The translations under genes were made by a program, and so were the position numbers. 64,000 nucleotides of DNA from Mytilus californianus (Eukaryota), in assembly GCF_021869535.1 (NCBI RefSeq), contig NW_026262712.1, positions 52,018,001-52,082,000 on the forward strand, in the 5' to 3' direction. Of this stretch, positions 38,601-44,600 are shown in pieces; the first letter of the stretch is position 1; each line of letters starts with the position of its first letter. Under the pieces are notes generated by a model. It saw nothing but the letters and a program-made list of their open reading frames with translations, did not search any database and had not been told where the DNA came from.

Positions 38601-41600
38601 TTAGACCATTTTGCTCTTTTCTTTATTTATTTTGTCCATTATTCTCTATTCTGTAATCCCCATCCAGACCCTTTTACATGCCCAAAGTTTACAGTACATT
38701 AATTTCTAATACATGAAGGTGGCCATCATCTGAACATTTTATGCCTTTTTTCCCAATATAATCTTCTTTTATGTATTTCATTACGGTGAGAATGTGTTTT
38801 GTGTACATCAAGAAAGCAGGCAAAAAAAAAAAAAGACAAATGATAAACACCTTTAAATTCACTAAAATAAAAACAAGGACCTGGAATTCTGACCTTGATT
38901 TTCACAATTCCTTTTTTTAAGCTAAATTTAACCTCAATAGAAACAAGAACTTTAACAGTATACTGTCGATTCATTATTATTTGTGGGATACCTATTTTCT
39001 GGGATGTCTTCGGTATAGTTAAAAATATAGTACAAATTTAAATGTTCAACCAAGTACAAATTATCTATAGGTTTGTAAGCAGAAGTTTGCAAAACAACGA
39101 AATCAAGTGTCCACAAAAAATAAATGATTATCAACCAATGAAAATTGGTTCTAGCGAAAATATATGAATCCATAGTAAATGCAATTGCACATTAATTAAC
39201 ATACAATATACCCATTAAGCACCACTCTTTAATGTATTTTATTTCAATTATAAAGAAATATGACCAAATAATTGCTTACATTTGTATCAATTAGTTGCTT
39301 TATAATGCATGCTGTCAAATAAAAGATGGCGATGTCAAACCTAACACTTTTGAAATTTTTTTCATTTTTTTGAAATTTGTAAGATCCCCAAAAACTTGGT
39401 AAATTTCTGTAATGGTAAAACAATGAAAATTAAAAAAATACTGGAAATTTATTTTGAACTAATAAAAAATTCCAATGACTGGTAAAATCATCTATAATTA
39501 GACTATCTTCATATTACTGGTTTTTCTCTGTAGTATATAATTTTACACGAAGTTACCATTTCTGTAATAGGACATTCTGGTACTCTCTCAAGTAAGAGCA
39601 ACCAACAGAAGTAAAATCCAGTTTACAATCGGTGCAATTTAGGGAAAAAAATTTATGTTTTCTATACATGACAAATCATCGGAAAAGTCAAAAGTTGGTA
39701 ATATGAAAAAAGTCTATTAGCAAACATATTTTTAACAAATGTTACCTTCAAGAAACCTCTAGTTTAATAATTTTATTACCTATATAAGCAAGAGTTTTAT
39801 TGACACAGAAAGACAGATTCAGACAGTGCAGTGCGGTACAGACTCACTTGGTTTTTTGTGACCACTTTCGTAATTGGGATAGCTTGTTGACTAGGAAAAT
39901 CCCAATTCCTCTAGCTAAAACATGCACAAATATATACTGATTATGAAAGCATAATGAATAATGAACAAATATGGCTAGCATCTACACATCCAAACTAACA
40001 ACTCCATGCGGTGATGTCCCTGTAAAAAACTACCAAGGTGGATTAACAGCTCATTCACATTTTCCATTTGAAAACTAGGTTCATTATTACTTTTGAACTA
40101 ATTAATTTTTTTTCCATATCTTTATAAGATTGAAATCTTCAAAATTTGTATGCCCAAGATACAGCAGACTAACAATGAAGGTTTCAAATATGTTTTAAAA
40201 TGAAATGCAAAATTATAGAATCATTTCAGAGCAAAATCAATCAAAGTTTAAAAGAAAAATGTCAATGAGCAGCAGTTAAGGAGGGATAACTCTTCCTATT
40301 AAAAACAAATTTCACAAATGCATATTTTCCCAAATCTGCCTTTTTCAGAAGATTTTTTATATTAATTTTTATAACACAGATTTCCACTTTAATATGAAAA
40401 CTTTTTCAACCTTGTTATTTCCTTTGTGGTTCTGTTATGCATTGGAAAAAGGGTAGCAGAGTTATCTCCCCTTAAAATGAGAAATAGACTATAATATTTT
40501 CTTTTCACCCGAACTCACTTGTTTGTTTTACTATCTCGAGACCATTTCTTCAGTTGAGACAGCTTGTTTACCAAGAAAATGCCTATTCCTCTTGCTAAAT
40601 TATATAAAATTAGGAATATTTGTTAATTTTTTATTTCTTTTTATCTACCTATTTGTGTATAACATATAGGCAGTGTTTACGGATATTTTCCAGATGTAAC
40701 AATAAGGAAAGGAAATGTGAGGCAGAATCAAATAAGACTACAGCCCAACAACAGAAGATAATCAAAATAAATATAAAAAAAGTATCCACTCTTTTTTTTC
40801 TGTTTAGCAAAAAATTGACAATATTCATTAAAAACTACAACTAAAGCATATACCTACAACAGAAGCATATAAAATGTACTTAACAATAATAATCAATGAG
40901 CAATCTGGACAAAAGGCATTTAATTTCAAGGTTTAAAATCCTCATAGAGAGATAACTTCTCAAAATTTTGTAAAAATTAGCCCCTCTCTTCTCTTTCCAA
41001 AAAAAAACACCTCCTTTTCAAGATGTAAATCCAAACCATTTGCTTACAAAGCTTGTTTTGCCAAATATATATGTAGATGGCACATGTCTTTACCATTATA
41101 GGGTTTAATTAAGCTTCAGATAATATTATTTAATTTATAGGGGACTTTCTTAAAAGACAACTACAAGTACTATTATGAAAACTTAAAAACGAAACCTCAT
41201 GCCCCCTTACAAAGTCAAAAATTTGCTTAGGGAATCCCAAAAATAATTCAGATAAAAAAATAGAAAATTAAATGGAGAATAGACACAGATGATGCCCCTG
41301 CTTGCATATAACATTATAAAGGGACATAACTAGAGAACTGTAAAAGTGATGCCATCCAAAATCAAACTTGATCTGTGTTTTATGGTTATAAGCATTGTGA
41401 ATAGGTTTCTTAACATTTGGTTGAGGCAAACTAAAGTTAGAGAACGGAAACTAAAAATTCAGCAATTTCTCCATTTATAAAGGGCATAACTCGAGAACGG
41501 TAAAAGTGATGCCACCCAAATTTGAACTTAGTTTAAGTTTTGTGGTAATAACATTTGGTTGAGGCAAAGTAAAGTTAGATAATGGAAACTAAAAATTCAG

Positions 41601-44600
41601 CAATTTGTCCATAACTCAAGAGCGGTAGAAGTGACACAACCCAATTTCAAGCTTAATCTGTTTTTTGTGTGTGGTAATAAGCATTGTGTATAAGTTTCAT
41701 AACATTTGATCCAGGCAAACTAAATTTAGAGAATGGAAACTAATTTTGGGGTGTACATACGGACAGACTTACAGACCGACAAGGGTAACACTTAATGCCC
41801 CCTTCCCCACAGCGGGAGCATAAAAAGGCAGTGCACAATGGCATTATTTTGTGAAGAAAATTTCACTAAATTTTGATTAGGGGTTTAGGAGAATCAGAAA
41901 CAAATAATTACTGTAGAAAATCCATGTCGTCCCAAAAATCATTTGGATGAAGAAATGAAATAAATGTACATAATGTGAGTAACTATAATCAAACTATAGA
42001 AACTGATTTATCAATAGTTTATATAAAGATATTTTTGGATAAATAGATTTTCTTTCTTGATTAAAATGCTTAATGCATCATAATTTGAGCAGATGCACAG
42101 ATTGCAGGAAATTAAGTGCATATATATTGATCTAAATCCTTACGACAAAAAAGTCTAATCTTCCAATTCATATTTTTTTGGTAATTTGCATTTATTCTTG
42201 ATCCAATTGTTTCATCACATTGATATTGTGTTAATACGTCTTTTCTTAATTACCTTTCCCACATGGCTTCATGATCCATGTTGTGTTGGGATTCTTTCTG
42301 AACTCTTCTACAAATAAGTTGTAATCTGCTGGTAACATGAAGGTCAGAGGTATAAAATCTGAAATAAAAAAAAAAAAATAACGAGTTTACAACTGCAGCA
42401 TTGTTTATGACTTGTTCTTTCTATTTCATTTGCATATTTTAGGTATTTTTTTTTTACTTTGAGCAAAAGTTAAGCAACTCAAAATTTTCAAAAAGGAATA
42501 TTTATCCATTGTTGTTGTTACTTTGCTGACATTGTCACACTTGGATGAAGGTAGGACTAGCCTTTACCACCAAGCATCAAAATCCCTATTTTCACTACCA
42601 TCATTGTCAAATGTGCATACTTATTTTATTGTCATTTCAACAACATTTGTAATATCACATATTTTAGTTAGCATCACATGGAGTAAAATATCTACAGTAC
42701 ACATTTTTTTAGAAAATTTTATCAATAATCATCATATGGGGTAACCCATTCCAACCTCAAAGATGTATTGTGAATTCTTTGACTGTGCCTGTATGGGCAT
42801 TTATGTTTAAGTGACTACTTGTACTCTACAATCATCTAAGATCACCCCCATTTTTGGTAAGGTTTGTTTTGCTTAGTTTTCTATGTTGTGTTTTGTATAC
42901 TGTTGTCTGTTGGTCATTTTTTTTCTTCTTTTTTGCCATGGCGTTGCAAGTTTGTCATCAAATTATGAGTTTGAATATACCTTTGGGATCTTCTGCCTCT
43001 CTGTAAAAAAAATGTTTAGGATATTTTAAAAAGAATTCAGGTACAATGTTACAAATACAGATATGCGCCTTTGTAACTTGCATTCATATCGTTTTACTGT
43101 ACTGAGTCACATAATAAAATACATGATCCTTTTTTATTGATGTCCAAAAGAAAGCATATTATATTGTCAACGCAAGTTAAAATGAGTTCAACTTTTTAAA
43201 ATAGCTACGTGTGATAAAAACCAGAATTTTAGAACATGGTCATGTTAAATTGAAATCTGGTATACTAGACTTAGTGTTGAAGGCCGTACTTTGAGCTATA
43301 ATTGTTAACTTTTTATACATTGCGACTTGGATGGAGAGTTGTCTCATTGGCACTCATACCACATCTTCTTATTTATATTAATGAAATAACTGTTCAAATA
43401 CCAAGATGAATAAATCTGCCATTTTCATCCTTCTCTGCCAATGGGCTTCCTTCTTTTTCTAAATCTTTTCTGTATCTTTTAATATTTTTAACCATTAAAT
43501 CTTTTCTTGTTAACTCAACATGATTCGGAAAATGATTTATAACTCTGAAAAAAAAGATCAAGTTAGTCTGGTGAAATAGGGTTCATCTATAATCTTAAGG
43601 TAGCTAGCTGGCCATGGAGTGTCTAAGTGTTAATTAGTTATAATTGGGCCTTGAAATAGCTTCAGTAACAGTTATAGTACTCTTAGATTTCATCTTAGTG
43701 TCTTTGTCTTTTTGTTAGTTGTTTTGAGCTTGGTACCATTCAGATGAATCAAGCCCTTTCCAACCTATTTTTACATTTAGATATAAGAAGATGTGGTATG
43801 AGTGCCAATGAGACAACTCTCCATCAAAGTCAAAATTTATAAAAGTAAACCATTATAGGTCACAGTATGGTCTTCAATGAACAGTAAGCTATAAAGGGCC
43901 CCAAAAAATTACTAGTGTAAAACCATTCAAACGGGAAAACCAACGGTCTAATCTATATAAAAAACGAGAAACGAGAAACACTTATGAACCACATCAAAAA
44001 ACGACAACTACTGAACATCAGATTCAGATCATTTGTTCTTATGTTCCATTAATGTTACACCACTGTCCCAAGTATTGAAGTTAGGTGGAGAATTGAGCTC
44101 TCACAAACATGATTAACCCAAACACATTCTTTATGTACTACTCCAACACCAGGAGCCTGTAATCAAATGGTTGTTTAAGTATGAATCTCCTTTGAATAAT
44201 TAAATATTTTGTCATCTTAAGGCCTTTTATAACATTCTACATGGTATAGGTTTTGCTCATAGTTTTTCACATCCATGCCCTTTGGTCTATGGTCTACTGG
44301 TGGATAGCTGTCTCATTGGCAATCATAACACATATCTCCTTATTTTTATATAAACAGTAATTCAATGTAGGCAGCAAAACTATATTTCTTTGTTCAAAAT
44401 ACCCCTTTGATGTTTTCCCCAATAATATAACTGTCATTTACAGATGTTTATATTGAGTACTGCTCAATCCAAGAAAATGGTATCATTCTAACTGATAAAA
44501 TTCTTTACAAACCTGCCAAATTAGGCATAAATTTTTACATTTGTCTACAAGGAAGAATCCAGCCATTTTTAAAAGGAGGGGGTTCCAACCATATGTCCCC

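Follow-up and report, generated by a model that had tools for sequence, protein, structure and literature searches.

A stretch of 64,000 nucleotides (nt) of the Mytilus californianus genome (RefSeq assembly GCF_021869535.1, contig NW_026262712.1, positions 52,018,001 to 52,082,000, hereafter referred to as the window) carries on its minus strand a complete gene for the mussel orthologue of TTLL1, an ATP-grasp enzyme that serves as the catalytic subunit of the tubulin polyglutamylase complex (TPGC) and whose activity is characteristically confined to this assembly with TPGS1, TPGS2 and other proteins. A loop in the active site of the mussel protein reads ARGIGI, with an Arg at the position that in human TTLL1 is a Gln and is the basis of the 'elongase' label of the human protein. 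The observations as a whole are best explained by a mussel TTLL1 orthologue with an Arg loop that is normal for its lineage and that arose near the bilaterian stem, a reading to which we assign a probability of about 0.8; the functional meaning of the residue is proposed with less confidence and is weighed on its own below.

The orthology is well defined. The best matches of the mussel protein all carry the name TTLL1 and are 69-99% identical to it along their full length, whereas paralogues such as TTLL6, TTLL7 and TTLL11 score far below them. The protein of the window is 98.6% identical to TTLL1 of M. galloprovincialis (P0310), from which it differs at six residues, and its full-length identity is 74-76% to echinoderm and amphioxus TTLL1 and ~69% to vertebrate TTLL1. 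The Pfam family PF03133 is matched by the M. galloprovincialis protein with an E-value of 1.2e-102 and by four exons of the window taken singly; the TTL domain occupies residues 63-367 of the 423-amino acid (aa) form, with a low-complexity tail of ~55 residues behind it. A maximum-likelihood tree groups the window protein with Mytilus within a starred mollusc clade. The description of the gene in the initial annotation as an otherwise conventional TTLL1 orthologue is supported by the identity, the Pfam match and the placement in the tree.

The encoded protein (418 or 415 aa) has a core-only build and is without the cationic microtubule-binding domain of the autonomous TTLLs. The donor-site residues of glutamylases are kept, with GFARF, HGGKW and RIMKY falling on R241, K283 and K377 of TTLL6, the residues that define glutamylases (bioRxiv 10.1101/2020.06.07.139295, Mahalingan et al.). 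The His equivalent to H68 of human TTLL1, which has been named as the alpha-carboxylate-neutralising residue of TTLL1 (10.1101/2020.06.07.139295), is also kept within the motif NHFPNH of exon 3, a motif present in 56 of the 70 listed proteins, including most of the full-length TTLL1 orthologues. Judging by its orthology, the gene most likely encodes the subunit that performs catalysis in the TPGC of the mussel.

The exon 4/exon 5 junction and the position of the arginine

Exons were located from stop-free stretches, and their boundaries were read in the DNA and fixed by sequence anchors. Exon 4 (42254..42358; this and all other exons of the gene lie on the minus strand), which by itself matches the Pfam TTL family with an E-value of 1.4e-06, ends on WIMKPCGK and the first base G of an Ala codon (TGG ATC ATG AAG CCA TGT GGG AAA G, followed at 42254 by a gtaatt donor). 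Two alternative copies of exon 5 are available to complete this codon. Exon 5a (40519..40594, 76 nt) has the acceptor tttag at 40594 and continues with CA AGA GGA ATA GGC ATT, in which the Arg codon AGA lies at 40590-40592 and the Ile two residues on at 40584-40586. Exon 5b (39848..39914, 67 nt), equal to 5a in phase, has the acceptor ttttag at 39914 and continues with CT AGA GGA ATT GGG ATT, with its Arg codon at 39910-39912. The loop is K-A-R-G-I-G-I with either copy and the Arg codon is AGA in both. The second determinant region, split over exons 10 and 11, reads EVNASPSLT. Direct reading of the minus strand in an intact 14-exon gene therefore confirms that exon 4 joined to either exon 5 gives the ARGIGI loop, as first annotated, and the accompanying caveat, that the second region is EVNASPSLT and not TTLL4-like, holds when exons 10 and 11 are read together.

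The two exon 5 copies form a tandem duplicate, with ~76% identity in the DNA and flanking introns that lack similarity. Neither length is a multiple of three (each exceeds one by a single nucleotide), and inclusion of both would break the frame, and since they share the same phase they are mutually exclusive. One M. edulis model (P0294) fuses 5a and 5b in frame and looks like a mis-model. The splicing is backed independently by other sequences: the form with 5a matches the RefSeq model of M. galloprovincialis (P0310) and is also used in a second protein (P0321); the form with 5b matches a protein of M. edulis (P0356) and occurs in a further protein (P0355) that is encoded intron-less by a Logan contig of 1351 nt (L001). 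Both copies are kept in two M. galloprovincialis-type assemblies, where they are 97% and 100% identical to the copies in the window and each encode ARGIGI; exon 5b is 100% conserved in the two. The alignment of the TTLL1 gene to the two assemblies encoding P0310 covers only ~7 of 35 kb, at ~85% identity, with the introns matching in part; the window accordingly belongs to a mytilid mussel that is related to, yet distinct from, the source of those assemblies.

RNA reads were compared with 39700-43650. In the 6% of run X21 that was sampled, exon 5a was covered at ~2-fold depth and exon 5b by no reads, and in an RNA-derived contig exon 3 runs on into exon 4. The high-copy intronic repeats at 41280-41810 and 43264-43395 dominated the joints listed, among which those of exon 4 to 5a or 5b do not appear. 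Nothing was found in favour of an artefact, in which the motif would stem from faulty splice modelling, from a pseudogene or from misassembly. The canonical splice sites and the open frame, the recurrence of the same junction peptides both in the RefSeq model and, for related species, in transcript contigs free of introns, and the conservation of both exon 5 copies in other assemblies argue against it, and its probability is next to nil.

The residue was placed by a HMMER alignment to TTLL6 (8t42/6vzt), which is gap-free from K174 to I184 and sets A-R-G-I on C179-Q180-G181-R182; thus the mussel Arg sits at the published initiase/elongase determinant, the TTLL6 Q180 position to which it had first been assigned. 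The Ala and the Thr of EVNASPSLT align on H362 and S367 of TTLL6. Q180 is the main determinant of elongation versus initiation in TTLL6 (10.1101/2020.06.07.139295), and the premise of the initial annotation that Gln marks elongases and Arg initiases agrees with that study. The Gln class comprises human TTLL1, 6, 9, 11 and 13 and the Arg class TTLL2, 4, 5 and 12, and family-wide the column divides the TTLLs into ligases forming alpha-peptide bonds and ligases forming isopeptide bonds (10.1101/2020.06.07.139295). TTLL6 was turned towards initiation by Q180R together with H362I, and a TTLL4-like mutant set of TTLL6 comprises C179A/Q180R/R182I/H362I/S367H (10.1101/2020.06.07.139295). In our alignments the same column holds an Arg in the glycine initiase TTLL3 and a Met in TTLL7.

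Measured against this initiase pattern, mussel TTLL1 has Arg at Q180, Ala at C179 and Ile at R182, but Ala and Thr in place of Ile at H362 and His at S367, Ala being uncharged like Ile; the Gln at the Q180 position, on which the human 'elongase' label is based, is an Arg in the mussel. In a search of solved structures, which gave no PDB entry for TTLL1 or TTLL4, the best chain for the mussel protein was the engineered C179A/Q180R/H362I TTLL6 (6vzq, 137.2 bits), with the wild type (6vzt) at 133.1 bits.

Vertebrate TTLL1 is an orthologue with the same core-only build of ~420 aa, EVNASPSL(T/S), the His of NHFPNH and the contacts to the donor glutamate, whereas its loop reads AQGKGI from hagfish and lamprey to mammals and that of the mussel ARGIGI. 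TTLL4 resembles the mussel protein in having A-R-G-I at TTLL6 positions 179-182, as inferred from the mutant design of Mahalingan et al. and from ASARGIGI in a flatworm ttll4, but it is a paralogue with Ile/His in the second region as against Ala/Thr, and a long autonomous enzyme with the microtubule-binding domain that TTLL1 lacks. Of the two loops cited for comparison in the initial annotation, KPCGKAQGKGI was recovered in primate and other vertebrate TTLL1 (132 clusters), while ARGIGI of TTLL4 was matched by way of the flatworm protein named ttll4 (KPPASARGIGI). The engineered TTLL6 C179A/Q180R/H362I (6VZQ, 6VZR, 6VZS), which prefers branch initiation, shares Ala-Arg in the loop with the mussel protein; unlike it, the mutant has Arg and not Ile at 182 and Ile and not Ala at 362, and is a monomeric paralogue with ~30% identity.

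Distribution and history of the arginine and glutamine states

The distribution of the two states was surveyed in 250 TTLL1-like loops, defined by an identity of 55% or more to the protein of the window across 100 or more residues. The loops came from a profile-free search with exon 6, which gave mostly exon-sized fragments and from which full-length identifiers were gained, and from word searches for which TTLL1 of pig, the amphioxus TTLL1 loop region and TTLL1 of Mytilus served as queries. The taxon sample consists of the best 120 matches per search (nearly all of them vertebrates in the case of the pig query) and is without priapulids, nematodes, tardigrades, placozoans, ctenophores and choanoflagellates. 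The determinant column holds Gln in 184 loops, Arg in 63, Ser in two and Cys in one, and the Arg-type loop is ARGIGI, rarely ARGVGI.

Arg was found in all 15 mollusc entries, which represent five classes, and in five annelids, the brachiopod Lingula and one bryozoan, three flatworms, the nemertean Tubulanus, the acoel Symsagittifera, nine echinoderms of five classes, one hemichordate, amphioxus and three tunicates. Gln was found in all the vertebrates sampled, with lampreys and hagfish among them (AQGKGI), as well as in 13 of the 14 named arthropods (SQG[AVI]GI), in five cnidarians, the sponge Halichondria and two green algae, and in unnamed protist-like fragments. Among the named invertebrates, the only exception within the Arg groups is the nemertean Lineus longissimus, with Cys (P0319). 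Ser occupies the column in two planthoppers (P0131/P0277), and two metagenome fragments with Arg (P0148, P0108) share 63% and 44% of residues with the protein of the window. A Gln-type TTLL1 paralogue in genomes with the Arg type was not seen among the best 120 matches of the Mytilus query, a search that was not exhaustive.

The mussel Arg is therefore the conserved TTLL1 state of nearly all the bilaterians that are neither vertebrates nor arthropods, and no mussel novelty; conversely, the Gln of human TTLL1 characterises the vertebrate and arthropod proteins and does not hold for all of TTLL1. The initial annotation had proposed that the mussel orthologue may have switched naturally from elongation towards branch initiation, and had itself named as evidence to the contrary that Arg be common among TTLL1 orthologues already known to elongate; the first half of this, that Arg is common among orthologues across Metazoa, is what the above survey found. 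A recent switch from elongase to initiase in mussel TTLL1 or in the mussel lineage, although the loop does differ from that of human TTLL1 and fits the A-R-G-I of the TTLL4 type, is highly improbable. It fails since the same loop is present in five mollusc classes, annelids, echinoderms, amphioxus and tunicates, which makes the change far older than mussels, and ARGIGI is the normal loop in Spiralia, the acoel, Ambulacraria, amphioxus and tunicates alike. Contamination from a single source is excluded by a pairwise divergence of 70-88% and by the clustering of the sequences by phylum. The further suggestion that Arg is older than the duplication of exon 5 is true but trivial, as Arg predates the molluscs.

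A maximum-likelihood tree was inferred from 61 sequences, in which both the molluscs and the arthropods are starred. The vertebrates are sister to the tunicates, inside the Arg-type deuterostomes, with a support of 89, and three state changes are needed on this tree; upon removal of the seven loop columns, the deep nodes collapse and five changes are needed. The direction of the change is not settled by the gene tree by itself and thus rests on the accepted species tree, with sponges and cnidarians outside Bilateria and tunicates sister to vertebrates. On this species tree, the simplest history, with the fewest changes, has Gln replaced by Arg, with Ile two residues on, near the bilaterian stem, and Gln regained both on the vertebrate stem and among the arthropods. 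Since ambulacrarians, amphioxus and tunicates all have Arg, the vertebrate Gln would most simply be a reversal.

Only two alignment columns separate the two types, namely residue 143 (Arg vs Gln) and residue 145 (Ile, rarely Val, vs Lys, Arg, Ala, Val or Ser) in the numbering of the 418-aa form. The two residues are coupled in 34 of 34 Arg rows, and residue 7 is a weak third column that tracks the state. The rest of the active site is alike in the Arg and the Gln types, including the H68 equivalent and EVNASPSL.

Gene organisation and repeats

The window has a G+C content of ~31% and contains no N. The TTLL1 coding region (20569..55721) is a complete gene, as judged from the exon anchors, the splice sites and the Pfam TTL family (PF03133). 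The transcript has 14 coding exons, and the alternative copy of exon 5 brings the total to 15; an AG acceptor is present in 15 of the 15 exons and a GT donor at each internal exon. The splice forms are free of stop codons and encode 418 aa with exon 5a and 415 aa with exon 5b when started at the ATG at 55706. An alternative in-frame ATG upstream, at 55721, would add the extension MQRTG, as in the RefSeq model.

Exon 2 (53963..54028), identified by anchors and splice sites, is followed after a long intron by exon 3 (43402..43544), which carries NHFPNH; the codon of its second His (43520-43522) corresponds to residue 67 of the 418-aa form and to H68 of human TTLL1. Downstream of the two exon 5 copies, exon 6 (35605..35739) encodes the conserved core strand. 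Exon 7 (33978..34086), assigned with the TTLL6 alignment and Pfam, holds GFARF, with the equivalent of TTLL6 R241, and HLTNVS, with those of T263 and N264, and exon 8 (31939..32019) holds HGGKW, the Lys of which is equivalent to K283 of TTLL6, a contact of the donor glutamate. Exon 9 (31484..31546) and a short exon of 41 nt (30821..30861) precede exon 10 (23583..23628), which carries the first half of the KPWLIEVN motif with its E codon at 23583-23585. Exon 11 (22077..22186) begins with VNASPSLT (22163-22186), in which the Ala codon at 22178-22180 corresponds to TTLL6 H362 and the Thr codon at 22163-22165 to S367. Exon 12 (21346..21399) and the last coding exon (20569..20686), which ends with SPATWK and the stop codon, complete the gene.

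A tandem duplication of 114 nt, in two copies with 91% identity, lies at 23392-23622 on the minus strand and repeats the last 37 nt of exon 10, its donor and the start of the intron. The second exon 10 copy (23469-23508) has the same phase, a weak acceptor, two residues fewer and a His in place of the Pro of KPWLIEVN, and is probably a decoy pseudo-exon. In one of the related assemblies (GCA_965363235.1, L003), eleven extra tandem copies of the last 59 nt of exon 6 occur at 13666-14334 of L003, and none are present in the window or in the other assembly (L002); they represent either an assembly artefact or a local expansion.

High-copy repeats are found inside the TTLL1 introns, as units of 161 nt at 22474-23253, about three units at 41280-41810 and a further stretch at 43264-43395. 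The RNA contigs and reads on the intronic repeats are stacked thousands deep and differ at many letters, as would be the case for a dispersed family of transcribed repeats. Other tandem arrays, with a period of 159-175 nt, 2.7-4.8 copies and 84-88% identity, are located at 7359-8129, 50206-50664 and 52963-53665, the latter two within the long intron that separates exon 2 of TTLL1 from exon 3, and a 57-nt satellite lies downstream of TTLL1 at 14375-15628 (22 copies, 97% identity). In M. galloprovincialis, the divergent neighbour upstream of TTLL1 (first 3.8-4.8 kb of L002 and L003) is a gene for a VTT-domain protein (PF09335).

Possible functional meaning and significance

The Arg state may well be functionally meaningful, because every large clade keeps the residue constant and because its identity goes together with that of its neighbour. 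When position 180 of TTLL6 is an Arg, the side chain reaches the carbonyl of the internal acceptor glutamate, for which Gln is too short (10.1101/2020.06.07.139295). By analogy with TTLL6, the Arg of the mussel protein would reach the carbonyl of the internal acceptor glutamate and would favour the formation of gamma-linked branches; with the TTLL1-type Ala and Thr of EVNASPSLT and the putatively alpha-carboxylate-neutralising His kept, elongation would persist. The Arg-type complex may thus be able to start branches and to extend them, and not be a pure initiase, a proposal to which we give slightly less than even odds. A possible functional analogue, if the Arg-type TTLL1 does both, is TTLL7, which initiates and elongates; it is unlike mussel TTLL1 in having a Met at the determinant column (KPANGAMGHGI) and a microtubule-binding domain.

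It is unlikely that the Arg-type TTLL1 is a full initiase like TTLL4 or TTLL5 that has lost elongation. Three of the five positions of the TTLL4-like pentamutant are matched, by the Ala, the Arg and the Ile of the loop; however, the equivalents of H362 and S367 are Ala and Thr instead of Ile and His, and the His proposed to support elongation is kept.

Several points weigh against the reading favoured here. As to the history, an approximately unbiased (AU) test with the loop columns removed does not reject a tree in which a single branch sets all the Arg rows apart from the others (p = 0.249). As to the function, the proposal applies to TTLL1 a rule that was worked out on mutants of TTLL6 and on the human paralogues and that may not transfer. 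The tested switch of TTLL6 combined Q180R with H362I, and data on Q180R alone were not found in the text of Mahalingan et al. The Gln-type TTLL1 is listed under 'initiation' in the table of a 2021 review (PMC7970040), and according to a 2026 paper (PMC13376646) TTLL1 was first thought to do both. TTLL1 has never been thoroughly characterised in vitro (PMC12366701, 2025; PMC13376646), and the classification of human TTLL1 as an 'elongase' rests on sequence and not on assay.

A further alternative is that the Arg/Gln state is silent in TTLL1, with the partner subunits and residues such as the H68 equivalent setting the regioselectivity and the residue drifting between two tolerated states. At least three changes in animals, the rare Cys (Lineus) and Ser (planthoppers), the older work that credits the Gln-type TTLL1 with initiation and the identity of the remaining active site in both types all speak for such drift. 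On the other hand, the residue has stayed near-invariant in each large clade for hundreds of millions of years, while the protein is otherwise conserved at ~70%, and it is strictly coupled to its neighbour two positions on, a pattern suggestive of selection for both states; moreover, the split of the column between alpha-peptide and isopeptide ligases holds family-wide. A silent state is accordingly regarded as a serious possibility, though short of probable. The reading preferred here remains that of a mussel TTLL1 orthologue with an ancient Arg loop normal for its lineage.

Literature searches yielded no relevant papers on the activity of invertebrate TTLL1 or on the Arg/Gln pattern. A more far-reaching and somewhat doubtful proposal is that the determinant of TTLL1 regioselectivity flipped in the course of animal evolution, becoming Arg near the bilaterian stem and reverting to Gln in vertebrates and arthropods, that the TPGC of most animal phyla would be able to start branches alone and that the 'elongase' type of TTLL1 seen in mouse, human and fly would be derived. 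If true, the derived 'elongase' TTLL1 would be confined to exactly those lineages that supply the model organisms. TTLL1 is a major glutamylase of brain and cilia, the label of which has moved from 'both' or 'initiase' to 'elongase' largely on one residue. The two sharply conserved natural states, coupled to one neighbour and to no other position, offer a clean natural experiment for the Q180 rule in TTLL1, and the label of vertebrate TTLL1 should not simply be passed on to invertebrate annotations. The feature is an ordinary one for the mussel genome, and for the field of the tubulin code a moderately interesting, testable variant that is family-wide.

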